From Orbicella franksi (taxonomy: Eukaryota), in assembly GCA_964199315.1 (NCBI GenBank), contig OZ116712.1, forward strand, positions 8,680,001 through 8,744,000: a stretch of 64,000 nt of DNA, read 5' to 3'. The translations under genes and the position numbers were made by a program. Positions 84 through 23,056 of this stretch are shown one piece after another (the first letter of the stretch is position 1; the number at the start of each line of letters is the position of its first letter). Below the pieces are notes generated by a model. The model was given only the letters and a program-made list of their open reading frames with translations. It was not told the DNA's origin and made no database searches.

Positions 84-317
84 AGGGGCTCAGTCATGGT
101 ATTTTGAGTTATTTTGGCCACATACAAAATTACCTTTAAATGGTAGGAAACCTGAAAAGAACAGTTTAATAAGATAGATAAACACCAAAGACATAATGAT
201 AAACCATAAAGGAACAAGGATGGCTAAGGACCGAGAAGATTAACACGGATTACAAACGACGAATTTGAAAAATTGAGGCTAAACTTTTCAATATGCGCAA
301 ATCCTGACGTAGCTCTT
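84..317. mobile_element. Short non-autonomous DNA element flanked by TTAA (Kolobok-like MITE)
   Basis: TTAA at 80-83 and 318-321; imperfect terminal inverted repeats AGGGGCTCAGTCA / TGACGTAGCTCTT. A second copy lies at 24196..24429 inside the duplication. Confidence 0.5.
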
Positions 318-2110: not shown

Positions 2111-2803
2111 AATATTGTGTTATTGTGTTAAAAAAGTGTTACCTGATTCTAATTTAAATATGTCGAAAATTCTGCAATGATATTGGAATTAAAAGAGGAG
2201 CTAGCGGATGCAGCAATATCTCTAAGAGAGTCGGAGACATTTGGCTTTTGTGGTTTTCTTTACTTGAGTTTGCACGTAATCTTTCGGTGAAGATCTGACT
2301 GAGAGGTTACAATTATTTATCTATTGAAGGTATATTCGTGCAAGCGTTTCTATTTCTGATAAAACGTTACAGTTTGGACCTCAGGGCGAAACCGGGCTCC
2401 TCCAGGAAAAAGATGAACAAAATACGTTTTCTTGCTACATTTCTAAATTTAATTTCACCATTTGTTTCAAAAACAAATTCTTAAATCAAGCACCCTGCCC
2501 CAAAATAAGAAACAAGCCCATTGCGTGCGACCAGCTTACGAAACAAATTGTTTTGCCAAGTTGTTTCCGACAGTCGTTTTGGCACGTGATCATGCCTGCT
2601 GGGGCACTGTGCTGAGGCTACATCGTACAGGAACCAGTTTCGTGAAAGCATCTTAAGTCACAAGGGCCTCTTCAAATGCATTTCAGCCTAAGATATAAGT
2701 CTGTCAATTTGGAAAATCTAATGATAAAGCAGGCATCCGCACCAGGCACTTGAAAAATACCCGATGAAATCAGGAAGGGATCATTCTTTCACTTGATATC
2801 GTT

Positions 2804-2989
2804 ATGGCTGTGAAACACAACGTAGTGTTTACAGTCTTGCTGTTTTTGAGTTTGTTCTACTTTGCTTCTAGCAAAGAAAAAAAATGCGAACAGATCAAGA
2901 TACCCATGTGCCAAAGCATTGGCTACAACTTAACTTCTATGCCAAACATGTTCAACCACGACACACAAGAGGAAGCGGCGCTTGAGATT
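2804..2989 (+). pseudogene. 5' part (signal peptide + first half of CRD1) of the five-CRD gene, interrupted by the transposon at 2990
   Basis: MAVKHNVVFTVLLFLSLFYFASSKEKKCEQ...TQEEAALEI breaks exactly at the element TIR. The continuation HQFWPLVEIKC resumes at 20573. Confidence 0.93.
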
Positions 2990-3475
2990 GGGTGTGGACA
3001 AAACCTGGGCCTAGGCCCATGGGCTAGCCCATGGGCCAGCCTATCGGCTACCCTGTGGGCTACCCTATGGGCTACCCCCGTAAATTTTTATTTTTTTTTA
3101 ATTTTTATTTTTTTTAAATTTTTTTTCAGACTGTTGTTATTATTATTAATTATTAATTAATAAATTATAATAAATAATTTATGAAATGAAATACTAGGAA
3201 ATCTTGCGCACGAAAAAAGCATATCTTCAGACGTGAAACGTCTCACAATGCTGAATAAGCCCAAGGTTATCGATATTAAGTTGAAACATCTTCGGATTTT
3301 CCTCGGCAATCTTCGGCAATCTTCGGAAGTCTTCAGAAAACAGTCGGAGATATACGGAAAATCGTCAAAAACCTTGTTATTAGTTGCTTGGAGATATGAA
3401 ATGTATCTTGCACACTCGAAGATAATTTCATATTTCCGCACAACCATGTAATATCCTCTATATATTATCATTAAT
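2990..3475 (+). repeat. Left TIR of the Mutator-like element
   Basis: Reverse complement of 20090..20563. The outer ~190 bp are nearly identical; the inner part is similar, with an ~80-bp left-only and an ~50-bp right-only segment. Confidence 0.88.
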
Positions 3476-3620
3476 TATTATTAATATCAATAATTAATTG
3501 TTATATTGTGAAAAAATACTCGATTTTGATTGTCTAAGAGCAGTGCAATTCAGCTGTAACAAAAAGTGTAACACCAGTGCAAATTACACATCATTCTTCT
3601 GGAATACGTTTGCCTGAAAA

Positions 3621-4120
3621 AACATAGAGGATATTACATGGTTGTGCGGAGATATGAAATTTATCTTCGAGTGTTCAAATCGATATCTCACGAGTGAGCG
3701 CAGCGAACAAGTGGGATATCGATTTGAACACGAGAAGATAAATTTCATATCTCCAAGCAACCATGTAATATTCTGTTTATTATATAAACCTACTAATTAT
3801 GTTTTTGACGATTTTCCGAAGATTTCCGAAGATTCTCAAAATGTTGCCCGAAGGTCGTACGAATATTTCCGAACATTTTCCGAACTTCTCCGAAGATATC
3901 CGAAGATTGCCGAAGATTGCCAAAGATTGCCGAGGAAGATCCGAAGATGTTTCGACTTAATATCGACTTTCTTTGGCTCATTCAGCATTGAAACAGGGCA
4001 AACTTGTCAGAAAATGTTTCGAAATCGATATCTTCACTTGTGAAAATAACATGTTATTTTCACGTGTGAAAGATGACTTTCGCGCAAAAGATTTCCTGGT
4101 ATTTCACTGATGTTTATATA
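3621..4120 (+). repeat. Interspersed non-autonomous repeat (AGAGGATATTACATGG... family)
   Basis: The same sequence recurs at 3262..3470 (inverted), 16526..16625 (partial) and 20100..20370. It contains a CCGAAGAT-like subrepeat tract. Confidence 0.75.
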
Positions 4121-4877
4121 ATAAAACGGGAAATTTCCTAACGTCAACATTGTCAATTGACAGCTGTCAAAACAAGGTATCCGCTGACCAGTATCACATG
4201 ACCATATCGCGGTCTTAGCTGTGCACCTCATCCAGTTCATGTGTCTTTTTAAGCTGACTGCTGACCAAGTTACTTTTGCCATTGAATCGCGGGCTCAACA
4301 TTTTTCATGTTTATATTACTAATAAGTAATCATACATACGGTTTTTTTCGTTCAATTTGAATTAATTTGCACTTGTGAGTTTTTCAAAAAGCTGCAATTG
4401 GGTGTTTACCTATACTAACGTATGTAAATACTTATTACGAATACTAATTTATTTACTCCTACCTCCTCTCTAGCTCGTCACGCAATCTTTCGTTCCCAGG
4501 GATAAGCCTATCAGTCAAAGAACTACTTAAAAGATTGCGGTATGAGCCGAAAGAACGCCTGTTCAGAAACCAAAAATTAATTAATGGCACAACGCCAAAC
4601 AGTATAATTTTCTGATGGGTGATACAAAATAGCTCTGGCTGCCGAGGACAATTTGCCAGTTTTGTACGCTTTTGTTGTTATTGGATATCCTTTTGCATGT
4701 GAGAAGTGGTCTGAATCTAAAAAAAAGGCGACGTGGAGGCAGCAGCAAGTGACGGTTTTCATGTGACGTCTTTAAATCCTAAACTGCAAATTCGAAAGGT
4801 CCCTGAGCTTTCAGTTTTTTTTTGGTATTAGATGACCTAAATAGTCGTATTTGTGAAATTTGTTTCTAACATACAGC

Positions 4878-4930
4878 AGTCGCGGAGGGTCGTGGGTTCA
4901 AATGTCATCTTGGACTCGAATTTTTTCTAA
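4878..4930 (+). mobile_element. tRNA-derived SINE fragment
   Basis: B-box-like GTGGGTTCAAAT followed by GGACTCGAATTTTTT. Confidence 0.35.
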
Positions 4931-5521
4931 GTTTCCTTCGATGCCATTTTATAGCTTGTTGCAGTTTGAATGTCTGATTTTTGTGCATTGACGTCACGTT
5001 TTTCTCGCGTGCTGCAGAAACCATTGCAGGTTCAAAGATTAGTCTACCACGTGCACGTAGCGGTTACTTTTGTAGTCACGCTAAGCTCCTCTCGCCCACC
5101 CGCACACACCATCGAGTGTTAGGAGACGACAACCGCCTCCCTTCCCAACCCACCCCTCCCCTCTTATCCCATCCCGTCAAGCCCCTGTTTTGATTTGGTG
5201 TCAAGTTCGCTCGTGACTCTTATCTCGCTTTATATGCATAATATCTGCTATGCTGCAAAATTTGGCGCTTTTGCAAATCTATAACGATTTGTAACACACA
5301 AGAAACTGATGCTGCTACCACCAAAGCAACACTCACCAAGAGCCAGACGCATGTAAACTCAAAAGCATATATAATGTAAAAGTCATTACATATTAATCTG
5401 ATCAACTTTTCTTGTGACATTTTTAAGTAAGGTAAAGTCTACGAAACTAAAATAACTGACAAACAATTTAAAAAATAAAATGCTGACAACTGCCGACATC
5501 TGAAGAGTACCATAAACACAG

Positions 5522-8500
5522 CTAATAAAGTCTTTGCTGTAAAAGTTTGATTTCGTCACTTTCTAAACTGCATTGAATGCTCACTTTGCTAGGGTCGAAG
5601 TGAGGATTCCTTGCTTTTATACAATTGGCATAAACGTGGTAATGCTTATTTTCGAAAGTCTTCTTGTACTTTCCTTGGCTTTCGATCCAGACGAAATCAT
5701 GCTCCTTGTGTCGGATGCAATACTGCTCATCAATTTCTCCCCGGGTGAAGTGGTCTGGCCCATCCCTGATGTTACCATTGCATCCCGCGGCACACTTTTT
5801 GATCCGAGAACTGAGTTCGATCAGTTCAAACGGAGTAGTGATCGTTGGCCGTACAGCGGGCTTTGCCGGTTTGCTGTTCTTTCGAATGGTTATGCGAAGG
5901 GGGTTGGAAGACGCTTCAGCTGTATACTGCTGGGATGTTACTTCTTCTCCCAGGGTCTTTGCATTTGTGTTCTGTTTTGCCTTACTGGAAGTCATGACGT
6001 CGGGTGACTTGTTGCGACGCTTTCGTGTGGGCTTTTTAGCGCCCGCATTCTTGTTCACCGCAAATGTTGTCAATGCAGTCAAGTTGTCTTTCTTTTCTTG
6101 ATTTCTGTACCATTTGAAATACCCTGAAACGTTTTTGTTACGCACTGCTACTGCCATTGTGTGGGCACAAAGTTTTCTGGCCTTGAAGCCCAAGCAGTTG
6201 CTATCACATAGGTATCCAGAGTTAGCAACTGCTTTCACTGTGTGGGGCGTTTGCGAGGACTGACTTCTCACCAGAAAACAATTTTGCTCAAAACCCTCAC
6301 GAACACCCTTTTCCTGGCAAAGCCTCTGTACTTTTTCGGTGAGCAATTTTAAATCTTTCTCCGCGAAAAAATCGGAGAGAGCGTGTAAGTCGATGGTATA
6401 ATTTTTGTTGAGCTGAGTTTGGGGCGGGGCAGGGCGGTGGCTGTAGACTTTCTTGAAATTTACTGGATCGACCACAACCTTTAAATTGCTGGAGGCGAGA
6501 TCGCGAGTACCAGGTTGTTCGTCAAAGAAATTAGAATTGTCTTTGACGGAGTTTTGATATTCGGGCCTTAAGATATACGGACTAGAAAGCCCCAGCAAAG
6601 TCCGCTGAACATCACGGCGCTGTTTCTCAATAAGCCCTTTCAAATCGTCAACGAAAGTGGCCATGTCAGTGGCTACGAAGTCCTGCCAACGTTTAACAAA
6701 CGCGTTTGCAGATTCCGGGATGTTGTTTGTCTGCACTTCGTCTCCAAACCCAGCATTGCTTGATGCTTTGGCGCTGACATGATTCCATATTTCGTCTGCC
6801 TTATATCGCCTGAAATACTTTGAAAAACAAGGCTCATCAGGTGATTCTGAAAATTCCTGTTCGTCCCATTTCTTAGTTAAAACATCCAACGTTGAGTTGT
6901 ATTCTTCATAAGAACTGGCAAAAACCAAGCCACCACTGCCAAAAATATCATTTATGATATCATTCGTGAATGATTGTGACAATCGCAGTTTGCGACATTT
7001 GTCCTCGATGTTTCTTTGAGCGTGAACTTTACACAACAATGACACCGAACTTGGGAAAACTTGGGCTAGAGCTTGTCGCAGCGCTTCTTCTGAATCAGTG
7101 CAATAACCCTTTAGGCTGACTTGCAAGCCAGGTACTTGAGCGGAGAGCTTTTGAAACAAGGTCAGGTACGTAGATTTATCTTTTAACATACACAACATTA
7201 CAGGGCCAAGCATCACTGGGCAGGTTGGTGGATTACTGCGTTTCGTAAATAGAGTTGTGTTCGATATGTTGTGACCAAAACAAAAAAAGGTCCGAGTTTA
7301 AAAGTGACATCTACGTACAACATAGACGTGTGTCCGTCAACCTCGTTACAGCAGAAGTTTACAATGTCTTCAACCTGTTCATCGCTAAACAAAATAACTT
7401 TGGGCGATTCATTGTCAAGGCTGTAACACCTAACAAATTTTTTTTCTTCCGTTTTCATTTTCTCAGTGATCGCCAAAATGGGATCAGCAATACGTCCTCT
7501 AGCGTCCTTTGATTTCAGATATTTTGCCTGTCTTTCATTTCTTGGTAAAGCTCCGATGGAATTACAGTTTTCAAGGTCTCCAACTTCGGTTTCGACCTCG
7601 TGGACAGCTCTCTTTAGGCCTTTGCCTTTTTCCTTCGCAGATTTTTCTAGACGGTTGCGTGTACTCTTATAAGTTCTTAAATAGGGGATACTGCACGATT
7701 TCTCGTTGCCGTGTTGCTTGACCTTTACCTCATGCTCAGGTGCACCAACGAATTCGTATTTGACGAAAACAATGTTGTGATGTTTCCCATCTGGATGGGT
7801 CACATCAACGATTGTTTTGTGCAGACTTCTGTCACTAGCATTGACAAATGGCCGGCGGCACACTAATAAGGCATCGGAGTTGTCTCCAACTTTAACCACT
7901 TTCTCCACTTTTCCTGTCTTATCGCATCTTGTGTCGTACCACTTTTTTTTGGTCTTGGTTTGAACCCAAGAGCCAAGATCGTCCGACAGCAAGTCTTCAC
8001 CGTGTTCGAGCGCATCAAGATTAATCAAAAATCGGACGTTGTGCTTAATTCCAACGGGATTTGAGGTTGCAATATATTCCTTGTAATATTGCTCAGCGTT
8101 AAGCAAAAGCGGAACAACTGAATCATTAGACCCAGTCTTGTCGAGGAGACTGTTTGGTAAACTCGGTAGCGATTTTCTGCCCAAGTAAAATCTGACATTC
8201 TCTGATTTAGAGACTTCACTTTTAATGCTGTGGAGTGAAACAAAAAAGAAAAAATGAATGGTGTATATTGAGTATACTTTTTCAGTATTAATCTACTATT
8301 AATATACATCCAGAAATTTCTCGAATCTGATTGGCTTAGAGAAATGCAGTCTTTAGTAAATTCAATGCAGAAATGAGGAAATTCAGTGCAAAAAACAAAC
8401 GCGGCATCCTGATTGGTTAATAAACAAAGGCAGCCACAGGGGGCCAATCAAACTCTATAGTCTGACACTGATAGAAAACAGTTATCAAAGCTACTGAGCT

Positions 8501-8836
8501 CGTCGTCTAGTAAAAAAAATGTTTACCTGTTTTCTTCAACGTCAACATTTTCTTCCGATTGGCCACTTTCCGACATCTGCAGCTGACCTTTGGGTAGATT
8601 TTTATCTGTAACAGTTTCTGTACTAAAAAGGAAAAGGGCAATAAATAAATATAACAGCTACAATCGAGGTAGGCAATGACCTATGAATGACTTTTTCTGA
8701 TGGTTTTATCAGTCAATGAACTCACAGCTTTTCCGCGTCAGATCCCTCTTCAGTATCATCTTCATCTGCATCTACGATCACATTGCCCTTGGGTGTGGCC
8801 TCTCCCTGTCTCTCCTTGTATTTACGCTGTTTGGAA
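5522..8836 (-). pseudogene. MULE (Mutator) DDE transposase with SWIM zinc finger, spliced, single -1 frameshift near 7260
   Basis: Motifs LYVDVTF...GPVMLC...YCTDSEEAL...LLCKVH and SWIM-like CDSNCLGFKARKLCAH. Adding one base after TAT-CGA gives a continuous YRNTTLFTKRSNPPTCPVMLGP. Phase-compatible GT-AG exons at 8836..8726, 8622..8527 and 8191..5522; candidate further exons at 9350..9322 and 9592..9503. Confidence 0.85.
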
Positions 8837-8958
8837 CTGCAGATAAATTGAAATTTTTATAACACTCTCTTCAGTTAATTTCCATTACACATTTTGAAAT
8901 CCCACACATTTCAACTCGTAATTCAATTTCGTGGATGATAAAAGCAAATTCATATTAA

Positions 8959-9253
8959 CCCACGGGACGTACAAGCGGGGATGCTATCTGGCCATGGGGA
9001 TGCTACCCCCCCCCCTGAAGTTTTTCGAAGTTTTGAAATAGGATTAAAGACTGGCGCATCCAAGATGGCAGCTGTAATGACGTCATGTGGCGTCATATGA
9101 CGTCAAAACCAACAAAAAATTACGTCCCAATAGACGTGCTACTGTGCCCTAAAAGAGGTAAAACCTTATGAAAACCCTATGAGCGGGGGGGGGGGGCCCT
9201 CCACTCTCCTCCTGTACGACGTGGGAGTATGGATTTGCTTGTACGTCCGAGGG
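8959..9253. mobile_element. piggyBac-type MITE in an intron of the MULE gene
   Basis: TTAA at 8955-8958 and 9254-9257; TIRs CCCACGGGACGTACAAGC / GCTTGTACGTCCGAGGG. Confidence 0.75.
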
Positions 9254-10025
9254 TTAATGTCTGAAGCCACTGACATGAAAGTAATTTAAATAGATGAGAC
9301 CTTAGTTTCTATAAAACTTACATCGATGCAGCGTCAGAAGAGCCTTGTCCCTAAGAGGTAAAAGATAAAATAAATATAAATGGGATAATTCTTACGAAGA
9401 GCACAATCGTTCAGTAATTTTATAACATCCATGTTATGGTCACTAGATAGCAGTCGAAACAAGGTATCATCAAACTGGCGTCACTCAAACTCCAAAGGCT
9501 ACCTTAATTTTGCTAGGACCTCCTCTTGAACTCTCCTTGCGTCTCACTCTGCTTTCTGTGTAAGCTGAGATCCGGCTCAGATTTATCGCATGCTGAAAAT
9601 GGATACAATTATAGCATGGTTATACTGACAATTCGGCTAATCAACATACAAACGGAATACCATGTTGGAGTTCTAGCAGTTGCACTCTTATAAGGCGTTT
9701 CCATACTGTGCTCTCTAAGTTTCTGTGAATTATTTTGACGGATAACTCGAGTACGGAATAACGTACAGACCTGACGCTTGGACAAGTTGTTTATATATTC
9801 ATTTTCTACAACCTGTAATAGTTGACTTAATAGTTTTAGATTTATTTTTTTCTCGGCGTGACGTTGGCGTGACAGTGAAACCCACCTATTGGCATGATGC
9901 ATCTTAGCCTTAGCCTTAGGAATCGATAGAGAACAGGAACTGTGATTTGCCAGTCCAAGAGTACACTTAATTCATCAAATGAACCATTCCAAAACAAACG
10001 GACACGCACACAAAAGCCCCTGGAT

Positions 10026-13000
10026 TAGTCAGGGAGCATATGTAATCCCATGGGATTTTTATGGTGAAAGCAAACCACCTACCCAGATGTTTTAAGGGGA
10101 CCCTAAGGAACACAAAAACTGTTGTCGGCAATTTTGTAACCTGCACCGGCGGCTGCTCTGGGGGGTCTATTTTTAGACCCATATGGCTCAACATGGAATC
10201 GAGGCTCGAACATAAAATGGCGTGTAAATACAATTAACTACAATAAATTTCCACAAAATTACCAGGAATCTTTAATATAGTCTATCTAATACACATTCAT
10301 AGACTTAAGTAGTAAATACTGATCACGTGATCAACACTGCACGAAAGCGAGGCTGGTCGTTTGTTGTCTTCAAATAAGCATTAAAAGCATATTTCTTTTT
10401 CTCGAGTTGTTGAGAAAAATGACTACAACAAGTGAACTACATGATATTTTTTGTTCACGTGAATTAAACTACATTTGAATAGGTTTTGTTCACGTAAGAC
10501 GACATGAAAGTGAGGCTGAGCTCCTCGGCACTTGTTAGGCCTGTTCTAAGCGTCGAGCCAACGTCGTGCTGAACCAAATTCCTTTCCGAAAATTAGGGCT
10601 TTCGGTGCGAAGAAGAAATACAACTAGATGAAAACAGAACTAACCAAATTGGCGTTTAGAACCACTGCCGTGCTAGCGTCGCGCTATCATAAAACCAAAT
10701 GGAATTAGGTTCGGCACGACTTTGGCTCGACGTTTAGACCAGGCCTTATATCAGCTATTCGATATGTTAGCGATAATTAAGGTTGCTCCGAGGGCGTAAT
10801 GTTAACCATAGCAGGTTTACAGGTATATATAATTATTACTACCCAGAACCTAGTCAGGCTTTTGGCGATAATAACTGCTTTAAAAATAACACAACTGAGC
10901 CCATAATGCATTGCAGTCTACAGAACATAGATGTCAGGTAAGAATCATTCATCATCCTCGTCTTCCTTGTTGTCATCGTCCTGCTCATCCGATGTTTCAT
11001 CATCACAGCTATCATTCTCAATCATATCGACATTGTCACACGCTTCCCCTGTCTCGTCATTGCTGCAGCTGCATAGATCTGTGCAAGTGAAACCCGCCCT
11101 TCGACAGCTGCACCTGTTGTTTCTGCATTTGTCCTTCCCACAGCCACACTTGACAAGATAAAGAACAGCGTCGGGTGCCGGCTGCAGTTTCGTCATCACC
11201 GGCATCCATTTGTCTGAAATATAAAAGAATAAGGCAATGCATTAAAGTCATCTCGATCTGCAGTGTCGAACTTGAGAGTCTATTACTATATCAACTGTTA
11301 ATTTATAATAACCTTTGTCCTTTTTCCATCCATAGTTCTCTGGTGATGGAAGGTCTGGATTAGGGACTTTGTCATTGGCCCAGATGATGGCTTGGTAATG
11401 CGCTCGCTTAATGGCCTCTCGGAGAGCAGCTTGTGTAGGCGGTAGTCGTTCTGACTCGGCCTGTTTTCTTCGAAAGAGGAGCCACCTTAGATCTTTCAGG
11501 CTGGATATCTTAGTCTTGGGCAGGTAAAGTTGGCACACTAGCTTCTCTATTGCATAGAACATGCCCACTGTGGGAACGACGGTAGAGCCGAGATCTGCAA
11601 GTGCAGTGACACATTCTTCATCAGCTTCAAGAAACGCTTTCCAGCATTCCAGCTTTCCTTTAAATGCAAAGTTTCCAGTGACATCAGCTCCGCTCCAGGC
11701 ATGAAAGCCAGGTAGTGCTGCCGTTCTAGCTGCTCCTAAAGCGCGGACAATTGGACAAAGCTGGATAGTTCGGTGGCGCTGTCCTCTTCCAGTGACGAAT
11801 GAAGTGTCCGCACATAGCTCCGGGTAACGTCTAAGGGCTAGTACAAACACGTCAGTGTCCGGTGAAAAGATCTTGATACTCGTAGCTCCTGATGTGGTGG
11901 CATCTACTGCATGTAGCAGTATTTTGGTATCTGCCTCCTCTTGGTCGCTATCGAGGTACGCCATATCCTTGTGTGTTGCCCTACACTTACTGCTCCATGC
12001 AACCACCACGTGCAAACCATTCTGACGCCCCTTCTCTAGAGTCTTGCTGGCAAGATATTGCGTCAGTTCATCCTTGGTGCTGACATGTGCCAAAAGTCTC
12101 TTCATCGGTACCTGCATAAGAAAGGGTGTACTAGTTTTAGTGTCTTTACCTCTATATCTGGCCCTATTCTTCTTGCAGTACATTATATATAGGATCATTG
12201 CTTTTGTATGAAAAACCGTTAATAGTATACCTTGGAAATCTGAGTGGTGTCAGTAATCTTGTAGCTGATAGGTTCCAAGCATCCCTGACGAAATTCGCGA
12301 GTTGCGGTCTTTAAAGACAATGGTACATCATACCTAAAAGCAGAATAACGTGCCCACTAATGTAAGTAATTATATCTAATATAAACACAAAGGTTACAAG
12401 GTAAATATCAGCGGGAGTGACAAACCTGTCGAAAATAAGACGAATTTCATCTGCCTCCTTGTACTTGTCGAAGATCGTCACAGTGAAATGATTGGCCAGA
12501 TCCGAGCAGGTCTTGATCCAATCCGGTTTTTCCAGTGCTTGTACTTCGGCCATACCATCTACAATGGAAACCTTGATCTGCACATCTGCATTAGCGAACT
12601 GGTCAGTGGGTTCAGCCTGCGCAACTGATCTGTCACTTGGCAGCTTCTCTAGAATACTCATCAAGGCGCTCTTTGCGGAACAGTGCAGCATATTGCCATC
12701 GGCGGCAAACATTGATCGTGGAACTACCGAGAACTCGTACGCTCCCACTGCCTCTTTGATGTCTATCTCTGGACGGGACTTGCAGATTACCATCATCCGC
12801 GCGAAGAGACATCGATCTTCCTTTAGCTCGATGATCTTATCCTTTGTAGCCACCCTAACTGTTTTCCCAGTAGTCTTCCACGTTAGGAGCTTGCGCTTCT
12901 TCATCACGTCCCAGATGCTCTTCTCGGCTGTCTGTATCCGTTCCTTAACGAATGTTCCGAACAGCTTGTTACCAATGACGCTTTGATCGCAGAGATCTTT

Positions 13001-16000
13001 CTTCACTTTCTCGGGCATGCGCACTTTCGTCACTAGGTTGAACAGATCAGGGCCTTCTACTGTGAAAGGGTTGGTGAACCGTTGAATACTAGTGGTCAGC
13101 TGCTGGACGTTCCTTTCTTCACGTAACCTGACAGCAGTGGTGAGGTTGTGATGGCTAGTCTGTGTCTTAGAAGAAGTACCTGCCATCAGCTTGGCTTGAT
13201 CTGCCAGTCTTGCTAACTCAGGTGCAATCAAAAAATACTTTGTGCGTGCAGTAGGGTTCAGCGTGATGCCAATCAATCCACCTGAGACTTTCATTGATCT
13301 GTTGACGTGTTCAAGCGCGTTGTCAGCGCCAACGGCACAGAATGCTACGTTCGCGTTCTTGTTCACCACCCAGTTGCCATTCTGGAACTCATGGTAGATT
13401 TCAGGATCGGTCTCCTTTATTATCTCCATCTCTGCCAAGTAAACAGGAATCATACGAGCGTAGTTTAACATGTCATGCGCAAAGAAGTACTTCACAAACA
13501 ACTTTAGGGCTTGTAGATGAAGATCCCAGTCTCCAGTCCGCACGGCTCTGATGAACGTCATCATCTCCAAAACCATTGCCATGTACCCTCGGGTGAACTT
13601 GAACAGTGGACTATCCTCATGGTCTGCATCAAACTGCTCCATCTTTGCAGCAAGCTCTGTTGAATTGATGGTCTGTGCCAGTTCTTCGTGCTTTGCTGTA
13701 ATATCTTGGTTTTCGCCTTTTTTACACGCATCGCTTAACTGGTTAGCCGACTTCTCCACAATCGTGCGTACAGCTGGGTGTCTCACGAAGAAGGCTTCCT
13801 GGTAGAGGCTGAATAGAGCTTGTAATGTAACCATGTGCGCTGCCTCTCCTCTCTTTACGTGGCTCCCACCGAGAATCTGCTTCACAGTGGAAGGCCCATA
13901 GAGATCCGACTCTACCCAGCACATGTCCAGCCCGCTGTTCTCGATGAATGCACCGATTGTGCGAAGTTGGGCCATCACGATGTGTAGCTCACCAGGACGA
14001 AGTATTATATGCCCAAGATCTTGACGGGTCATCTGTAACTTCTTTGCCGGTTGATACAGTCCCATATCAAGCGATATCACAGTCCTCCTGTTCTGCCCTA
14101 CAACCGCCGTGTTAATATTCTGTGCTTGCATCAGAATGGTAAGCAGAGTCTGCCACTCGTGTGCTGGTGCAGCGATCAGGGGAGGGGTGCCAACTCGTGT
14201 CAACGGCATGGAACTACTCATAGTGGAGTTATAGCCAGACCATACTGGGATGTTGGTACTAGGGGGCTGATTGTCTTCAACTTCTCCATTGGTGATCGTT
14301 CTGGTCATACTGCGTCCGAGAAGCCATGTGAAATCTTGCTTTTTGATGTACAATGGAAGTTGGTCTTCGGTACACAATCCAAACTGGGGGAAGGTGGGAC
14401 CAACAGGCCTTCCGGGTGGTGCAGGGCATTCTAGCAAGGTTGTCACAGATTCAGGAAGCTCTCTGATTGAGCGACGACACTGATCTCCGGGGTCCACGGT
14501 CAGCTCTGGTGCTACATCGCCTGCTTCCTGCCTTTGGTAGATTGCCATCGCTGTGCCGTGGAAGGTATTCTTGCCATCAGGAGTGTCCTCAGCGAAATCC
14601 ACATTATCGACTGCAAAAAAGACGTGCCCACCCAAAACTACATCAGGGGGTATATATAGACCATCATTCAGCTCCATGCGCTTTAGAACGCTAGCTTCGA
14701 TTTGGGCCTCTACTCTCAGGATCCTGTTGTAGTCCACTGACATTCCGAATCCATGAAGCATGGTTATGAGCTGCTTGCTTCTCACGGCCTGGTCTACAGC
14801 TATCCCAACAGCTAACTGCAGCGGCATCTCCGACGAGGATCTTACAACATCCGACTTCTTGTTTTTGACCTGCCTCTCAGTCAAACACATTGATACAGTG
14901 GTCTGGGATAGAGCCATTGCACGATTGTACACTTCGTCACATTTCTTTCCAGCAGAAAGCTCATGTTTTGGGCCTTGTATAATAATAATGGCAGTGCGAA
15001 GGGACTCACCAGCAGAAAAGGTACTGATATTATGCAGGCTCTTACGGTAACCGGGTGGGCCATCGCAGAAAAAACAGACATTCTTATTGTAGAGAGACGT
15101 TTTCGAACGGGTTAGTTGAGGAATTTCTACTGATGAATCTGGTCGTGATTTTCGCCTGGACTCATTGGGGCCTTCGAGCTGCCTCTCATACCTTTCTCTT
15201 GCTCGTCTAAGCATCCCAGTATGTACTGCATCTTTATAACATGATCTATGCCATGATGCCCGCCCATCCTCGAGCTCTTGGACAGAAGCAAACCTCAACT
15301 TACTCCACGCTTCTGTGTACTCAAGATTACCGTACTTACTCCATTCCTCGATCGATACCAGAACTTTTTCGTGAGCTTCGGGCTTTTCAACTAGATTTTC
15401 GTTTTTTTTTCTTTGACAAATTATACATAAGTGTAAATCCAACCCTTTGGCCTCAGTTTCGTTTGTTTTTTAACCAGAATCCGTTTCCATATCTTATTAA
15501 ACACCAAAAAAACATGCCGCTCTAGATGGACTGTAAATCCAACATGGCGGACCTCTAAAATGATGAAAATGACCGCTGACCAAAATCATTGTTTTTTCCT
15601 GATTTCAGTGAGCTATTGATTTGAATACAATCCCCTTAATAAATTTAACTCTGATCAATTTTCAGTAGCAAAATATATGCCTTCATGCCTTTGATGCTTA
15701 TTTGAAAACAACAAACGACCAGCCTCGCTTTCGTGCAGTGTTGATCATGTGATCAGTATTTACTACTTAAGTCTATGGATATGTATTAGATAAACTAAAT
15801 TAAATATGTCTGGTAATTTTGTGGAAATTTATTGTAGTTAATTGTATTTCCACGCCATTTTATATTCGAGCCTCGATTCCATGTTGAGCCATATAGGTCT
15901 AAAAATAGACTCCCCATAGCAGCCGCCGGTGCAGGTTACAAAATTGCCGACAACATTTTTTGTGTTCCTCAGGTTTCCCTTAACACATTTAGGTAGGTGG

Positions 16001-16059
16001 TTTGCTTTCACCATAAAAATCCCACGGAAATTTATTTTAAGACATATGCTCTCTGACTA
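10026..16059 (-). mobile_element. Academ (AcademX-type) DNA transposon nested in the Mutator-like element
   Basis: TIRs of ~365 bp (10026..~10390, ~15690..16059); termini TAGTCAG...CTGACTA; 3-bp TSD GAT (10023-10025, 16060-16062). Encodes a DDE + XPG/PIN-like + Cys-rich protein. Confidence 0.9.
10945..15442 (-). CDS. AcademX transposase/XPG-like nuclease/Cys8 zinc-finger protein; predicted exons 15442..12426, 12333..12231, 12111..11313, 11213..10945 (1395 aa)
   Basis: Motifs DNVDFAEDTPDG, SLDMGLY, RPGELH, DNALEHVN, DQEEADTKILLHA, SPDTDVFVL and CGCGKDKCRNNRCSC...CTDLCSC. Three GT-AG introns (92, 119, 99 bp) join the three listed ORFs in frame (4188 nt). Confidence 0.82.
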
Positions 16060-16525
16060 GATGTGCATGGACTGTAAAAGGGTTACGTCATAAAACCAAC
16101 CTGTTCATCACTGTCAGATTCCCCACTTGATATTAAAATGCAATTCTCTTCATGCGCAGGAGCAACTTTGGAGTTTTTATTTTTACTCTTGCTCTTCACT
16201 TCCTTTCCTTTTCTTTTTTTAGCTGGTGAGGCATCGATGCAGATTGTGACAGGAGAAAGAGGCTGAAATAAATAAGTCATAAGTTTTAGTGCTTGTGGTA
16301 TTTATTGTCACCCGTGCCTTTGTCGTTTTACCCTATGAAAACCGTAACATCAAAGAATTGAAGCCAGACGAGAGCATTAAATCTCTTTGACACTTCCTTG
16401 AATTTTGAGAACACTTTACTTTCTTTTTTTGATATTGAGTAGAAGGCTTCCATACTTCAGAAATAGATTGCTTATGAAGGTTAACGGCAGCTTACATCTT
16501 TGATATTCGACATCCATGTCATTAC

Positions 16526-16625
16526 TAGAGGATAATACATAGTTGCGCGGAGATATCGGATTTGAACACGAGAAGATAAATTCCATGTCTCAAAGCAACC
16601 ATGTAATGCTCTGTTTATTATATAA
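16526..16625 (+). repeat. Partial copy of the 3621..4120 repeat family
   Basis: AGAGGATAATACATAGTTGCGCGGAGATATCGGATTTGAACACGAGAAGATAAATT matches the 3621 copy with an internal deletion. Confidence 0.7.
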
Positions 16626-17129
16626 ACCTACTTTAACCTACTTTGGCTATCTAGACGACTGTTTATCTGTACTGAAGAAACAGGCATTTGCACAAGCACT
16701 ATTCCTAATACTTTAACTTCTAAAATGGCTAAATATCACGAGATAAGAATATGGTTTTTTGACGAACGCGTTCGCAGCTTTATGTCACGCACCGCCACAA
16801 CTCTGAAGTTAAAACTGCGCTGGTTTCCAGATGAAGCAGGCTACTCAGCTGAAAAGGTGTACACAAATATCAATTTACCCTCTCTCATGGCTAATGGGGA
16901 TAAAAACATTATTGGCTCATTAATTTTGGGTTTAAGATAACGATGACGTCACGTGCAAGCCAAGAATTTTCGGGATCCGGGATTTTACCAACATACATTG
17001 CGTGATTAAAGAGAACGCAAAATATCTTGACGGGATTTGGGATTTGACTGCGCTCCGAGGAGTGGAATAAACTAAAATTTCGGGACTGTTAGCCTTCCGT
17101 CAAGAATTCAGGAAGTCGTCACAACGTAA

Positions 17130-17620
17130 ATAATAAATAATAATAATAAATAATTAACTTATATTGCGCAATTATCAATTAAAAAATTTTCAATTGCGCA
17201 TTACAATATAAAGCTAAAAATTTACAATTTACAATTCACAATTAAAAAGCTTTAGAAAATAAAAAGGTCTTGATGGCTTTCTTGAAGCCTTGTACTGATG
17301 CCATGTTTCTTATTTCACTTGGAAGATCGTTCCATAATTTAGGGGCGGCCACATGAAAAGAGCGATCCCCAAGCGTAGCGAGCGATTTACATGGGCTATA
17401 ATTAAGGCGTAAACCATTGTTGGAACGCAGGTAATGTCTTCCAGCAGATTCTCTAACGGAAATAAGTTCACTTATGTAGGCTGGAGCAAGACCATGTACA
17501 GCTTTAAAAGTAATCAACAAAATGGACGTTCAAGCAGCGAACGCAAATCAACCGGGCGAGCACGTGGAGTCTATTTCAGAAGATACAATGTAAGACGCGG
17601 TAAAAACTGTTCCTGCAAAT
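17130..17620 (-). mobile_element. 3' fragment of an L2/CR1-group LINE (ORF2 C-terminus, 3' UTR, TTA-type tail)
   Basis: LITFKAVHGLAPAYISEL...YLRS...GDRSFHVAAPKLWNDLP...FKKAIKTFLF is the typical L2/CR1 ORF2 end. An AT-rich simple-repeat tail lies at ~17131-17160. Confidence 0.8.
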
Positions 17621-18739
17621 TTCAATTGTACTCTTGCATCTTACCGAGGTATGAAATTTACTACTTTTTCTGCACACGTAAGTTCAAAATTCTAAGAAAC
17701 GAGATTTGGAAAAAGCCATTTAAAAACGCGGGATGCAGGAATTTCGTAAAAAAGGAGCGGGCCCCAGTAGCTCACCGACAAAACAGGGAATATGCGAAAA
17801 AAAAATCAACAACGTGCAGAGAAAGAGAAAGAGCAGCGCTTACAAATAAGCGAAGCAAGATAAAACAAAACAAAACACTTATAACCATAAAGGCAGTTTA
17901 CAAGTTAAGCTTCACTATCTAAATTACCCCGACCTGCTCCCGTACTGGCCTCGTAGCTCAGTCGGGGTCAAGTTTTTTTTTTCGTTCCGTGGGAACCCTC
18001 CCAAAACTCCTTTTAGAGGGTAGTAACCCCAGGGGCTTTGGCGTATCGGCAGTATTACCGACTACCGGCACCATAAAACTCACCAACACCATTTAATTGC
18101 TATAAGTTAACCTTCTCTATCGCCGAATCATACAGCAATGTCGTAAACGTAACATGTCAACTGGGTTTAATCCTGATTTGTTTGTCTGTTTGTTTTGATT
18201 ATTTTTTTTGAGAGAGATTTTTTCGTGAAATTTGCCGCTCCCATTTTTGCGGAATTAGGTTTCTGCGAAGAAAAGGCGCGTGTAAATTCAGAAATGATTT
18301 GTTCGACTAAAGTTTTTTCCAGGAAACACTGGAATGGTTTTGATGACACAATTAAATCACGTTTCTTGCATTTTTGACATATTTAGATGTAAAGAAGCAA
18401 TTGAAGTTCTAATTGAGTATTTGATCTCTTTACTAACGGATGGAAAAATTCTACTTAATCGTAGCGCGCTAATGTATCCGAAACCATTATTAAATATAGA
18501 AATAAACTAAAAATTGATATAATCGATTATAACTGATGCATATCGCGGGATATCGAAACAGATTGGACACGCTGGGCCGGCCGGCATGAGCGGACACGAT
18601 GGTTTTCTAAAACAAATGATTTCACGAACCCATAAAGGAAAGAATCATTCGGAAGTTTGATTTTGCTATTCAAAAATAAAGGGATAAGTTGCGCGATAAC
18701 AAACAAAACATTTTCTGAGAAATGGCTAATAGAACTGAC

Positions 18740-19075
18740 CTTTCCACGTGGACAGTTTCCAAATCCTGGTGTAGGCTTCGTCAACTTCAAGCTCTCGCCA
18801 GAGTCACTCTGATCACTCGTTCCACCAGACTGAAAGTAGAAAAAAGTGTTGACGAAGTGGGTCACTAGATAATTTTTCGTGGAAGACTTTTGTAGTAACA
18901 AATAAAATCAAATGGTAACAAACTTATGTACCTGGCAAGACTGGAGTAAAGCAATTGCTGTGGCCTCTGCATCCCCTTCTTTTTGGTACTCGGACCATTT
19001 CTCACTTGGAGAAGGGCATCCCCTGACAATACTAGCGTACGAAAGAGACGATTTGTCTTCGGATGAAGAATCCAT
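18740..19075 (-). CDS. Two phase-0 coding exons (19075..18932, 18829..18740) of an unidentified gene inside the Mutator-like element
   Basis: ATG-started MDSSSEDKSSLSYASIVRG...LLQSCQ|gtacat ... ttttctactttcag|SGGTSDQ...CPRGK|gtcagt; exons of 144 and 90 nt, both open. Confidence 0.5.
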
Positions 19076-20089
19076 TTTCCAAAATTATAAAAAACTTTGC
19101 AAGTAAAGTCTATCCGAAGCGAAGCTTTGTGTTAGTCACGTTGTGTGCTATTATGTTACATAAGCAATCGGAATAACATGGTGTCAACTGAAACTGTCTT
19201 GTTTCCTTAGGAAATTTTGAAAAAAAGCAGAACACTGCCTGTCAGTTGCTCATTCATTAAGAGACTTATGCTGTGTTTACGCTTGAGCATTTTATCGAGG
19301 TATTGGAGTTAACTTACATAGGTAAATATTTTGTGCGTGTGAACGCCAACTAATTCCACGGAAAACGCCGCCCGAGAAAATAGAAAGTTAACAAATTATT
19401 TAGTACTATTTAACCCTCAGGCATGGTTAAGGTCAGTAACCAAGGTTGAGATGACAGACATACCCGCTTGCGGTCGCATAGTATTTCACATCCCGTGGTG
19501 ACCAGATTGCGTCAGTCTCATTCGATCACGTTTTCATTGTTTCCACGTTTTTTACCTAACTATCAATCTGGTCTCCTTCTTTGCCAAATCCGGACCAACC
19601 ACTAGGACAATGTAATCAACGAAATTTCTTGGTTAAAGGGATTTAAACCAGAATTGGTTTCTTGGTTTAACTTGCCATGTTTTTGCATGTCCAGCGCGCA
19701 TTGTCTTTTAAAGAGAAATTGGGCTCGACTTCTTGAGGTGTTGCAAAAGCAAGAGCCGCTGAAATCTTGAGACCTGAGTTTGCAGCTCAAAAACAATAAA
19801 ATAAAACGTGAGGACTACAACAGCTTTTCTTTTTCTTTGGCCGCAATTCAATTTGATGGTTATCGTGATCGATGACAGATCGGCTATTTAAGCCAGTATA
19901 AACACAGTACTAATGTACTATCTTTAACATCTTACAGCTGTACTTCCACTACAAAGGACTTAAATCAACTTCTCTACAATAAATACGAGGTTCGTTGAGG
20001 CTACCAAGGCAAACACTCGATAGTTCATTGATAAGTTGGGACCCCGGAAAAAAAACCCTGCTGTTGGTTCAAGCTTTCCTTATGCAGTA

Positions 20090-20563
20090 ATTAATGATAA
20101 TATATAGAGGACTATAGAGGATATTACATGGTTGTGCAGAAATATGAAATTATCTTCGAGTGTGCAAGATACATTTCATATCTCCAAGCCAATAACAAAG
20201 TTTTTGACGATTTTCCGTACATCTCCGACTGTTTTCCGAAGATTTCCGAAGATTTTCAAAATGTTGTCCAATCATTTTCCGAACTTTTCCAAACTTTTCC
20301 GAAGACTTCCGAAGTTTGCCGAAGATTGCCGAGGAAAATCCGAAGATGTTTCGACTTAATATCGATAACCTTGAATTATTTATTATAATTTATTAATTAA
20401 TAATTAATAATAATAACAACAGTCTGAAAAAAAATTTTAAAAAAATAAAAATTAAAAAAAAATAAAAATTTACGGGGGTAGCCCATAGGGTAGCCCACAG
20501 GGTAGCCCATAGGCTGGCCCATGGGCTAACCCATGGGCCTAGGCCCAGGTTTTGTCCACACCC
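20090..20563 (-). repeat. Right TIR of the Mutator-like element
   Basis: Reverse complement of 2990..3475. Confidence 0.88.
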
Positions 20564-20572
20564 ATTGAGATT

Positions 20573-22561
20573 CATCAATTCTGGCCTCTAGTCGAGATCA
20601 AGTGTTCGCCAGACCTAAAGTTCTTTCTCTGCTCCATGTATGCTCCCATTTGCCAGCCGAACATTAACACAAACGTTCCTCCATGCCGGTCAATTTGCAC
20701 ACGGGCAAGAAAAGGCTGCGCACCTTTCATGGGGCAATATGGCTTATCATGGCCCCAGCGAATGAGATGTAAAAACTTTCCAGAAGGCGTTGGTGACGGG
20801 TGGTGCCTGGGTGGAGCCGGCGACATTGCAGTTAATCATACGTTAACAGCCCGACCGGAATTGACCAAAACGAAAACAGCTAGCAAAAAGAAATGCGAAA
20901 ATATCAAAATACCTATGTGTCAAAATATTGGCTACAACTTAACTTCGATGCCGAACATATTCAACCACGACACAAAAGCAGAAGCAGCACTTGAGCTTCA
21001 TCAATTCTGGCCACTGGTAGAGATCAAATGCTCGCCTGACCTAAGGCTCTTTCTTTGCTCTGTGTATGCTCCCATGTGCCGGGCGAACTTTAAAGAAGAA
21101 GTGCCGCCATGCCGGTCGGTCTGTGAACGGGCAAGAAAAGGCTGCGCGTTTCTTATGCGTAAGTATGGCTTTTCGTGGCCCGAGAGGATGAGATGTGAGA
21201 AGTTTCCAAAAGAAGTTGGTGACGGATTGTGCCTGAATGGAGTCGAAAACGTTGAAGCAAATGATACCGCAACAGCTCGTACCACAACAGCTCAGACCAA
21301 AACGGCTCGTATGACAACAGCTGGACCGAAGGGGTTAAATACAACAAGTACAACTAGCAAGAAGAAATGTGAACAAATAAAAGTACCTATGTGCCAAAAT
21401 ATTGGCTACAACTTAACTTCTATGCCGAACATGTTTAACCACGGCACACAAGAGGAAGCAGCACTTGAGATTCATCAATTTTGGCCGCTAGTTGAGATCA
21501 AGTGTTCGCCTGACCTGAGGCTCTTTCTCTGCTCTCTCTATGCTCCCATGTGCCAGTCAAACTTCAAAGACGAAGTGCCGCCCTGCCGGTCGATTTGTGA
21601 ACAGGCAAGAAAAGGCTGCGCGCCTCTTATACGTCAGTATGGCTTTTCGTGGCACGAGCGAATGAAATGTGAAAACTTTCCTAAAATGGGTGACAGGTTG
21701 TGCCTGAGTGGAAACAGCGGTACAGCTAATCATGCGAAAACAGCTCCACCGACGGAATTAATTACAACAAACACAAATAGCAAGAAGAAATGTGAACAAA
21801 TAAAAATACCCATGTGCCAAAATATTGGCTACAACTTAACTTCTATGCCGAACATGTTTAACCATGATACACAAGAGGAAGCAGCACTTGAGATTCATCA
21901 ATTCTGGCCACTAGTTGAGATCAAGTGTTCGCCTGACCTAAAGTTCTTTCTCTGCTCCCTGTATGCTCCCATGTGCCAGCCGAACTTCAACGACGAAGTG
22001 CCCCCATGCTGGTCAGTCTGTGATCGAGCAAGACAAGGCTGCTCGCACGTTATGTTCAAGTATGGCTTTTCGTGGCCAGAGCGAATGAAATGCGAACACT
22101 TTCCTAAAGTTGGGGGAGACAAGTTGTGCATGGATACGCAAACTGCTTGGCCGAAGGGGTTAACTACAAAACAAACAAGTAACGGGAAGAAATGTGAAAA
22201 GATAAGGATACCCATGTGCCAAAATATTGGCTACAATCTAACTCACATGCCAAACATGCTTTATCACGACACACAAGAGGAAGCAGCACTTGAAGTTAAT
22301 CATTTCTGGCCGCTTGTCAATCAAAAGTGTTCACCTGACCTCAAGTATTTCCTCTGCTCCGTGTATGCCCCCATGTGCCAGCCGAACATTACAAGGAGAG
22401 TCCCACCATGCCGCTCACTTTGCAAAAGCGCAAGAAAAGGTTGTCTGCCTCTTGTGCGGCTGTTTGGCCTTTCGTGGCCCGAGCGAATCAGGTGCAGGTA
22501 TTTTCCAAAACGTGGTAGCGGACAATTATGCATAGGCAGTGAAGGAATTCCAGCTAATTAG
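20573..22561 (+). pseudogene. 3' part of the five-CRD Frizzled-5/8-like secreted protein gene (rest of CRD1 plus CRD2-5), still an open frame
   Basis: Four further complete 10-Cys CRDs, each beginning (S/G)KK(K)C, separated by Thr-rich linkers; no TM segment. Rejoined with 2804..2989 it gives a 724-aa ORF. Confidence 0.92.
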
Positions 22562-23056
22562 ACGACGAAAATAAGACATTGAGAGGTTCCCTACACTGAC
22601 TGAGGTGATGCATGAAACAAATTCTCTGCTAAGATAAACATAATATTTTTAGTTTGTGTATTTTCGTTAACTCGCAGTAAGAAAATGTCACTTTTTACGT
22701 CGCTAGCAGTAAAGCAAGCAGGCATTAAGTGAGTTGTCTGCTAGTATCGTGCATATGTCATGGCCTGTGATCCAACAGTCACTATATATTTTTACGATAA
22801 CTGCAGAAATTCTCGCGCGCTCATTGGCTAATTTTTCATTGTCAATAAGCGGACAGACGCATGAGTTTATAATTTATGCCATGCCTCAATAAGCGAGAGC
22901 GGACAATTTGACAATTTGTTATCGCAAAAAACAAATTGACATTAATTTTTAATGCATCTGTCCTGTTACTGATCATGAATTTCGTCATAACATTGTAGTC
23001 TACGGATCCACTCGGCTAACACTTCTTAGATTGATCCACAGCTACTTTGACAATGT

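Follow-up and report, generated by a model that had tools for sequence, protein, structure and literature searches.

A low-copy, very young Mutator-like transposon family in the coral Orbicella franksi, with one copy inside a five-Fz gene

In the coral Orbicella franksi, a gene for five Frizzled-type (Fz) domains is interrupted by more than 17 kb of other DNA, which raises the question of what this DNA is, whether it came in as one unit and how recently it arrived. We addressed this in a window of 64,000 nucleotides (contig OZ116712.1, positions 8,680,001 to 8,744,000; coordinates below count from its first base), for which a first-pass annotation had proposed an unusually large Mutator-like element acting as a nested stack of transposons inside an exon. 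The intervening DNA is a single transposon (2990-20563, 17,574 bp), very probably a member of a Mutator-like (MULE) cut-and-paste family that is very young and has few copies.

Ends of the element, target site and host gene

The element and the gene that it interrupts are laid out as follows:

2804-2989, plus strand: 5' half of the host gene, 62 codons, encoding the signal peptide plus residues 1-35 of Fz domain 1
2981-2989: left 9-bp target-site duplication, CTTGAGATT, codons L-E-I of Fz domain 1, the same as the unoccupied site of a paralogue
2990-3470, plus strand: left terminal inverted repeat (TIR) of the Mutator-like element, starting GGGTGTGGACAAAACC, in paired inverted blocks
20113-20563, minus strand: right TIR, in paired inverted blocks
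20564-20572: right 9-bp target-site duplication, ATTGAGATT, with one mismatch, its first base being unlike the left copy and the paralogue
20573-22561, plus strand: 3' half of the host gene, the rest of Fz domain 1 and Fz domains 2-5, open to the stop codon

The long TIRs described by the first-pass annotation are borne out, with a total length of ~480 bp and GGG as first bases. The outer arms (2989-3179 and 20374-20564) measure 191 nt and are 98% complementary, inner blocks of 86, 79 and 64 nt (95%, 96% and 94%) reach to about 3470 and 20113, and the left TIR is 95-100% identical among the eight genomic copies of the family. Because the unoccupied site of the paralogue is known, the boundaries of the target duplication are fixed, with eight of nine bases matching, and the interval of 2981-20572 that had been drawn for the element therefore runs exactly from duplication to duplication. 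The length of the duplication, left at 7, 8 or 9 bp until other copies could be consulted, is 9 bp: perfect 9-bp duplications flank four independent copies (C10, C3a, C8a/b and C3b), and matching duplications were not found in two, C1 and C8c. C8a and C8b are themselves another near-identical duplicate pair in the assembly.

The host gene gives five stretches of match to the Fz profile (E 3e-156) and is predicted to be intronless and, by its signal peptide, secreted. The element sits after codon 62, within Fz domain 1, and when the two halves were compared one by one, each separately, the 3' half showed no internal stop and 12 codon differences from the paralogue. An insertion into a run of CRD codons, with both halves of the reading frame open, had thus been read correctly.

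Transposase, family copies and age

One gene of the element concerns us first:

5522-8184, minus strand: Mutator-type DDE transposase gene with SWIM-like and C-terminal Cys/His motifs, by open frames and profile matches

This gene, earlier listed as MULE/SWIM cargo, indeed looks like one of MULE/SWIM type. A 1-bp deletion near 7262, private to the window copy, breaks it there into two frames (7213-8184 and 5522-7216), and three copies (C10, C1 and C3a) keep an open frame of 887 codons. Neither its start codon nor the 5' exon that it probably has was found, the ...ccacag just upstream resembling a splice acceptor, so that "intact" means here an open frame alone. Profile matches of the protein are to Mutator-type families only, namely Pfam MULE (PF10551; E 2.7e-4, 21.7 bits versus a cutoff of 27.6) and NCBIfam IS256 (E 8.2e-7, 28 bits versus a cutoff of 150), the latter over a stretch that begins shortly ahead of the second D and ends shortly after the E. 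Among 18 relatives, MULE is matched by eight and Transposase_mut (PF00872) by three, all under the cutoff, and Pfam SWIM by one (E 0.0076); a zinc finger of this type behind the catalytic domain is frequent in Mutator transposases without being universal. Invariant in all 18, down to 31% identity, are D292, D364, C385-x2-H388 and E491 (in a stretch reading N488..E491..N494..K498), and C660-x3-C664-x8-C673-x-H675 is likewise invariant; the DDE and CxxH signature of Mutator transposases has been described (PMC10045372), as have long MULE TIRs with G/C-rich first bases (PMC13359780). Neighbours in the protein atlas are MULE/SWIM clusters, and a search of the transposase profile against solved structures gave no significant sequence match. 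Every curated profile match of the transposase lies below its gathering score, so that membership in the superfamily is backed by a set of weak signals that agree with one another, together with the duplication length; with the D, D, CxxH, E and SWIM-like residues invariant, the assignment to Mutator stands.

Could the outer ends belong to another superfamily, with the MULE gene a mere passenger? AcademH elements also make 9-10-bp duplications (PMC10045372), but we hold this to be highly improbable. All eight close genomic copies of the gene lie inside the same TIR-bounded architecture, a MULE-type gene at an amino-acid identity of at least 97% occurs only within these eight, and an inverted-repeat comparison found no closer complete TIR pair around the transposase gene, which is thus the element's own. 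Nor did the 119 remaining open frames (at least 35 aa, both strands, outside the transposase) give a single Pfam match at E up to 0.01, be it to a kinase, peptidase, helicase or other domain; the "unassigned exons" of the first-pass annotation have to be dropped, and no captured fragment of a host gene was found in these frames.

The family is low-copy and very young. A genome-wide comparison found eight copies, seven of them independent, that are ~99% alike and collinear at 98.5-99.5% identity save for private insertions and deletions. The standard form is ~12.25 kb long (12,258 in copy C3a) and consists of ~480-bp inverted ends, one 887-codon DDE transposase gene and ~9 kb (about three quarters) of non-coding DNA with fragments of other repeats. 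Differences among copies are star-like, with 16-63 private substitutions per copy (a private divergence of about 0.16-0.6%) against 16 shared or otherwise variable columns. The window copy is privately substituted at 21 of 10,230 shared columns, and by this measure the insertion is young, as had been proposed. The sign of youth cited then, the few differences between the outer TIRs, does not serve, because the arms are copied from the donor and their similarity is no measure of age (two mismatches in C1 and four of 191 positions in the window copy, one position being common).

Three changes are private to the window copy: an AcademX-like insert of 6,034 bp, the transposase frameshift and a loss of ~770 bp. 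The insert is missing from the other copies, and the great size hence belongs to this damaged copy and not to the element as such, whose family is one of 12.25 kb; the reading as an "unusually large nested stack" is only half correct. Judged by its sequence, the window copy is dead, having lost the capacity to make transposase. It retains both termini, with outer arms that differ at those four positions, so that the three open-frame copies could possibly still mobilise it.

Internal DNA and the order of insertion

Apart from the transposase gene, the element holds the following:

3615-4040, unstranded: abundant short foldback or MITE-like repeat (4201 candidates, 72-88% identity), in all copies
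10023-10025: left 3-bp duplication (GAT) of the nested element, with its partner at 16060-16062
10026-16059, minus strand: nested AcademX-like DNA transposon, 6,034 bp, termini TAGTCAGGGAGCATATG, arms 10048-10390 and 15685-16027
10945-11205, minus strand: open reading frame (ORF) of the nested element, CXC, 86 aa
11248-12198, minus strand: ORF of the nested element, FEN/XPG/XRN-like nuclease, 316 aa
12311-15442, minus strand: ORF of the nested element, DUF6589, 1043 aa
16635-16967, unstranded: abundant repeat of ~333 bp (2077 candidates, 80-84% identity), in all copies but the internally deleted C8c
17242-17520, minus strand: old fragment matching the C-terminal tail of LINE ORF2, 92-aa frame, in all copies but C8c
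19264-19511, unstranded: abundant repeat of ~250 bp, in all copies

The AcademX element that had been reported inside the MULE is confirmed as a second TIR element with a 3-bp duplication and ORFs for DUF6589, a FEN/XPG-like nuclease and CXC. Such 3-bp duplications flank all 10 other sampled copies of this element as well as the window copy. Its transposase part matches DUF6589 (PF20231) only (E 1.3e-7, 31.1 bits, cutoff 27), and full-length relatives of the protein have about 1,550-1,640 aa, with a C-terminal part of predicted XPG/FEN/Exo1/XRN-like fold. For the 316-aa ORF, the predicted model (pLDDT 80.5) drew by VIA-align 50 of 50 FEN/XPG/Exo1/XRN-type 5' nucleases among the matches listed (Z 4.5-8.2), with Foldseek E-values that were all 0.13 or worse, and the motifs EEADT, DTD and H..G.D are conserved. 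Searched by sequence, this ORF matched neither Pfam XPG nor any solved structure, and the nuclease-domain profile found among solved structures only the CXC of LIN54 (E 0.067).

When the other copies were inspected, as had been suggested, for the presence or absence of the Academ insert, all seven lacked it and read ...CCCCTGGATGTGCATGG... unbroken at the site. The AcademX-like element therefore entered most likely after the window copy had landed, which makes MULE first and AcademX second the most likely order, though an AcademX-bearing donor copy may since have been lost. A single transposition of all 17.6 kb into the gene, with the AcademX element already inside, would agree with the intact outer termini and duplication, and MULEs with a nested element can go on transposing, as did a rice MULE with the MITE Os0548 (107 copies; PMC3903597); set against none of seven other copies with the insert, an internal site unbroken in all and a family that forms a star of near-identical 12.25-kb copies, we consider it very unlikely. 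The earlier suggestion that the nested elements were carried in as a unit thus holds for the short repeats and the LINE tail, which travel with the element, and is not borne out for the AcademX-like insert.

These residents, three abundant short repeats and the LINE tail, are already held by the standard 12.25-kb element in nearly all copies. The 3615-4040 repeat is related to the inner part of the TIRs, and word depth is very high at 3517-3600 and 3769-3852. The ~770 bp missing from the window copy at 16632, just before the 333-bp repeat, are present in five other copies. The fragment at 17242-17520 had been called an L2/CR1 tail, a clade assignment that is putative; its 92-aa frame gives more than 2000 matches, at only 44-64% identity, at the C-terminal ends of open frames of up to 1200 aa, the pattern expected of the end of a LINE ORF2. 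Internal DNA otherwise matches only repeats outside the eight copies.

The standard element might itself be composite, an older ~7.8-kb element having captured ~4 kb of neighbouring host DNA with its repeats through a more distant right end, and this origin would explain both its size and its cargo. Partial copies of the inner TIR module occur in right-arm orientation at 626-1015 and 7490-7816 (C10 coordinates), and the repeat-rich stretch (the 333-bp repeat, the LINE tail and the 250-bp repeat) lies wholly in the interval from the second module to the true right end. Against this, the outermost 170 nt of the terminus are missing from the modules, whose repeat family has thousands of members, so that mere insertion may account for them; the genome also has no shorter version of the element. 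We regard a composite origin as unlikely.

For the window copy, our best explanation is thus one MULE insertion followed by private damage. Transposase from an intact copy would have bound the ends and cut the element out, the element would have been inserted where a cut staggered by 9 bp had opened Fz domain 1 of the five-Fz gene, and gap repair would have left the 9-bp duplication, all steps that we infer from the family type. Resident repeat fragments would have moved together with the 12.25-kb element. After landing, the 6-kb AcademX-like transposon would have inserted with its 3-bp duplication, and one base of the transposase frame and ~770 bp elsewhere would have been lost.

The tandem paralogue and relation to known systems

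Two such genes stand in tandem, and the one hit lies downstream; its upstream twin, which shows the unoccupied site, is intact ~6.5 kb upstream of the insertion (724-aa ORF, L088:1323-3497; the upstream loci read end ~520 bases before the window start):

1-2121, plus strand: tail of tandem unit 1, 97.8% identical to 24114-26235, the tail of unit 2

The second unit begins at 2131. The exact empty-site string, proposed as a test of the insertion in reads, occurs in the paralogue ~3,550 bases upstream of the window start, and the test is therefore confounded. Logan contigs from four runs, aligned to 1501-4000, stop at 2967, 22 nt short of the junction and probably because Fz domains repeat within the gene, and cover neither a filled nor an empty unit-2 site.

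The same reads bear on whether the "tandem paralogues" are two haplotypes of one locus that the assembler stitched in tandem, in which case the sequenced colony would be heterozygous for a knock-out allele, the insertion. Identity between the units is 96.4-99.3%, inside the range of coral allelic divergence, all four runs yield over 2496-2967 a single contig version that is a mosaic of both units' letters, the two versions at 2403-2525 have depths (40+32, 113+152 and 4.5+5.4) that add up to the neighbouring depth, and the assembly has a further near-identical duplicate pair (C8a/C8b). These depths fit equally well two genuine units without differences along most of their length; moreover, the units adjoin cleanly at 2121/2131 with no N, and run X12, whose label is that of another organism, has a contig that spans 1703-2210 and so crosses the unit 1/unit 2 junction, which exists only in the tandem arrangement. 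We therefore favour two real genes and think stitched haplotypes rather unlikely, while giving them some weight.

With three open-frame copies and a star-like private divergence of about 0.16-0.6% per copy, the family may be active in the coral today, and the insertion would then be a segregating natural knock-out of one of the two tandem five-Fz genes, an idea that we put forward tentatively, as possible but less than probable. If true, colonies would differ in the dose of a secreted five-domain Frizzled-type (possibly Wnt-binding) gene. To our knowledge, active animal Mutator elements are very few, Muta1 of Aedes being one, and the coral MULE, if active today, would add a candidate that moves 12 kb or more. 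More directly, the coral now has a cleanly bounded, very young Mutator family with defined ends, target duplication, standard form, open-frame and broken copies, usable for activity tests and as an insertion-polymorphism marker. The locus also illustrates that a real five-Fz gene can escape gene annotation, and cautions that an "empty site" string may stem from a tandem paralogue and not from an allele.

The target duplication of Mutator elements and MULEs is ~9 bp (range 8-11). Like Mutator/MuDR MULEs (Muta1 of Aedes aegypti; arthropod MULEs, PMC13359780), the coral element makes a 9-bp duplication, has long TIRs starting with three G/C bases, encodes a single DDE transposase that bears the CxxH signature and a motif like a zinc finger, and combines low copy number (5-88 copies in arthropods) with signs of recent activity. 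Unlike the arthropod elements (1.4-10.0 kb), it is 12.25 kb in standard length and about three quarters non-coding, with a protein too divergent for the Pfam MULE threshold. AcademX, a lineage of the Academ superfamily (Kojima 2020, as cited in PMC10045372), has 3-4-bp duplications (PMC10045372) and encodes an XPG-type nuclease. The nested element resembles it in its 3-bp duplications (11 of 11 copies), its TIRs and its predicted 5'-nuclease-like C-terminal part; it differs in that its transposase part matches DUF6589 only and that it has no Pfam XPG match. Much non-transposase DNA within a MULE recalls Pack-MULEs, in which respect the coral element differs by having no host gene fragment found in it. 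A further parallel is the rice coding-MULE that gained the nested MITE Os0548 and then kept transposing with it (PMC3903597): the coral MULE likewise took up other repeats and moved on with them, but it does so in an animal, with a LINE tail besides three abundant short repeats as cargo, and its large private insertion is a DNA transposon, not an LTR element. All this is ordinary transposon biology, in which nested insertions in MULEs and the carriage of older insertions are already documented in plants, and the coral element extends that pattern without changing it.

Element boundaries and the interrupted host gene

The window, which contains no N anywhere, carries a Mutator-like element (MULE) whose element proper occupies 2990-20563 (17,574 bp), flanked on the left by CTTGAGATT and on the right by ATTGAGATT; the first-pass annotation had drawn it as 2981-20572, with ends that coincide exactly with the two target duplications. 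Its outer terminal inverted repeat (TIR) arms (2989-3179 / 20374-20564), of 191 nt each, show 98% complementarity, and three more inverted blocks extend the arms inward to about 3470 / 20113. As these ends recur as eight matched pairs across the 497-Mb assembly, chance origin of the pairing is excluded. The inner TIR parts (3246-3470, 20113-20373) and the internal modules 3615-4040 and 16525-16632 are akin to a family of repeats numbering thousands in the genome; insertions of such repeats may have extended the TIRs, or else the small repeats derive from this element type. Words of extremely abundant repeats also occur at 3517-3600 and 3769-3852, where contig word depth in one sequencing run (X2) was 30,000 and 8,800, respectively, vs about 60 in the flanks.

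The product of the interrupted host ORF has a signal peptide and five Fz domains; the ORF lies in a tandem duplication of two units, each with a five-Fz secreted gene and a shorter Fz gene.

Units of the host tandem duplication
Unit 1: G000:C15 (genome assembly), about 8675074-8682121, beginning 4,926 bases upstream of the window and ending at window 2121
Unit 2 (MULE-bearing): window 2131-2989 and 20565-26235

The units are 96.4-99.3% identical, with an extra 534 bp upstream of the gene in unit 1. Positions that tell them apart include 2867, 20714, and 20716, where unit 2 has T, G, and C and unit 1 has G, A, and T. Unit 1 has an intact 724-aa ORF and carries, at the homologous place, the exact empty-site string that had been proposed as a read probe. 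Because unit 1 thus shows the uninterrupted site, the insertion boundaries are confirmed and the left duplication copy is identified as the original sequence; for the same reason the probe is confounded, and reads with that string prove nothing about MULE polymorphism. Between the two host genes there are 13 codon differences (11 non-synonymous), too few for interpretation.

Logan contigs of four runs, placed on 1501-4000, stop at 2967, short of the MULE junction. All four runs showed a single version of 2496-2967, with unit-1 letters at 2687-2697, and none showed the window's version, a hint that the MULE-bearing flank haplotype is uncommon. One contig (1703-2210), from a run labelled as another organism (X12), spans the unit 1/unit 2 junction, and the Logan contigs lend weak support to a real tandem duplication.

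Transposase gene and family history

Two minus-strand frames are the halves of one transposase gene, in agreement with the MULE/SWIM gene anticipated inside the element.

Transposase frames in the window copy
7213-8184, minus strand: one half of the transposase gene
5522-7216, minus strand: other half of the transposase gene

Profile matches to Pfam MULE (E 2.7e-4) and NCBIfam IS256 (E 8.2e-7) were both under the curated cutoffs. Among 18 relatives, eight matched MULE, three Transposase_mut, and one SWIM, and a language-model atlas placed the protein among MULE/SWIM clusters. Relatives of the protein are cnidarian (Porites, Paramuricea, and Clytia), and two relatives are 77-80% identical. Residues D292, D364, C385-x2-H388, and E491 are invariant in the alignment down to 31% identity and form the DDE triad with CxxH signature listed for MuDR-type transposases (PMC10045372); a SWIM-like set (C660/C664/C673/H675) and further C-terminal Cys/His residues are likewise invariant. 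Across the whole genome, matches of at least 97% amino-acid identity occur only within the eight TIR-bounded copies, and there is no closer complete TIR pair around the gene, so the transposase is the element's own gene rather than a passenger. Numerous further Mutator-type transposase genes exist in the genome, all of them distant (24-66% identity). The true start was not found, with no in-frame ATG just upstream of the conserved frame start. A pyrimidine tract followed by CAG (...ccacag) lies just upstream of that start (L045:840-860 in the fetched locus of copy C10; about 8225-8245 in the window, minus strand), and this acceptor-like sequence suggests a 5' exon to the gene.

All eight copies were fetched with flanks, seven being independent since C8b is identical to C8a, and private substitutions were counted over the 10,230 columns common to these seven.

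Copies of the MULE family: length; flanking duplication (flanks of all eight compared); private substitutions; transposase frame
Window copy: 17,574 bp; 8/9 positions match; 21; one A missing near 7262, in this copy only
C10: 12,244 bp; perfect 9 bp, CCTTATGTG; 17; uninterrupted
C1: 12,290 bp; none matching; 21; uninterrupted
C3a: 12,258 bp; perfect 9 bp, CTGTAAGAG; 16; uninterrupted
C8a and C8b: 15,060 bp each; perfect 9 bp, CCAAATATC; 63 (C8a); holds a 2.8-kb TIR element (GAAGAAGCTAGTCATAAAAGGGG...) with 4-bp duplication AATT
C8c: 10,411 bp; none matching; 27; one stop codon
C3b: 13,345 bp; perfect 9 bp, TTTGATTCT; 58; stop codons and a 1-bp deletion

The uninterrupted frame runs to 887 codons (923 stop to stop). 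The duplications of C10, C3a, C8a/b, and C3b, together with that of the window copy, set the target duplication at 9 bp, among the 7, 8, or 9 bp initially considered. Barring private insertions and deletions, the copies are collinear and 98.5-99.5% identical, and nearly all variation is private, with only 16 of the 10,230 columns shared or otherwise variable. This distribution is the star-like signature of a recent burst. If neutral change is assumed to run at 1-3 x 10^-9 per site and year, the 0.2% private divergence of the window copy would put its age at no more than about 1-2 million years. Arm-to-arm mismatches in young copies number two in C1, two in C3a, and four in the window copy, with one position shared, and arm similarity is unusable as an age measure for this family. 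The proposal of a recent insertion stands on private divergence and the star pattern, not on the few arm differences first invoked for it.

The C8a and C8b copies (G000:C8:852440-867500 and G000:C8:1225368-1240427), 373 kb apart, are identical in sequence, flanks, and duplication, so that either a large genomic segment was duplicated or the doubling arose in assembly. Copy C3b (C3:23831129-23844474) lies 223 bp from a 6.6-kb AcademX-like copy (G000:C3:23824286-23830903), and a ~30-nt string flanking this MULE on one side reappears on the other, split by the AcademX element; possibly both elements inserted into a tandem repeat at this locus.

Nested element and repeat cargo

Where other MULE copies read uninterrupted ...CCCCTGGATGTGCATGG..., the window has GAT, then a nested element (TAGTCAGGGAGCATATG...CATATGCTCTCTGACTA), then GAT. 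This element has about 16 genomic copies, 98-99% alike and about 6.6 kb in standard length, some internally deleted, and 3-bp duplications were found at all 10 copies sampled. Its minus-strand ORFs encode 1043 aa (DUF6589, E 1.3e-7), 316 aa, and 86 aa (CXC). Relatives of the 316-aa part number 6,369; full-length proteins (about 1,550-1,640 aa) have it near their C-terminus, and its EEADT, DTD, and H..G.D motifs are conserved. Among the 50 structural alignments listed for its predicted model (pLDDT 80.5), all are to FEN/XPG/Exo1/XRN-type 5' nucleases (Z 4.5-8.2); the scores are middling, yet the list is uniform. AcademX elements are described as making 3-4-bp duplications and encoding a nuclease (PMC10045372), and the 3-bp duplication and nuclease-like ORF fit the AcademX assignment made at first reading.

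Repeat fragments carried by the MULE family (window coordinates)
3615-4040: foldback or MITE-like abundant repeat, kin to the inner TIR; common to MULE copies
16635-16967: 333-bp repeat; in MULE copies except C8c
17242-17520: diverged LINE ORF2 tail; in MULE copies except C8c
19264-19511: 250-bp repeat; common to MULE copies

Copy C8c is internally deleted and has neither the 333-bp repeat nor the LINE tail. Because these four fragments are present in all or nearly all copies, they moved as part of the MULE, and the suggestion that the nested elements arrived as a unit holds for them but is not supported for the 6,034-bp element (10026-16059), which is private to the window copy, as are the frameshift near 7262 and a ~770-bp loss at 16632. 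The rest of the non-coding DNA is family-specific. None of the 119 open frames of at least 35 aa outside the transposase matched Pfam at E up to 0.01, so no second gene or captured host exons were found, and the "unassigned exons" once listed as cargo find no support.

Comparison with known MULEs

The window MULE is real and was largely correctly observed, and its earlier interpretation was partly right. In arthropods, MULEs are 1.4-10 kb long, carry TIRs of 13-1193 bp, and occur in 5-88 copies (PMC13359780), and a rice MULE with an acquired MITE rose to 107 copies (PMC3903597). By this comparison, the label "unusually large" is apt insofar as the coral family is somewhat oversized, but the 17.6-kb size itself belongs to a damaged copy, and the family is otherwise a typical MULE.
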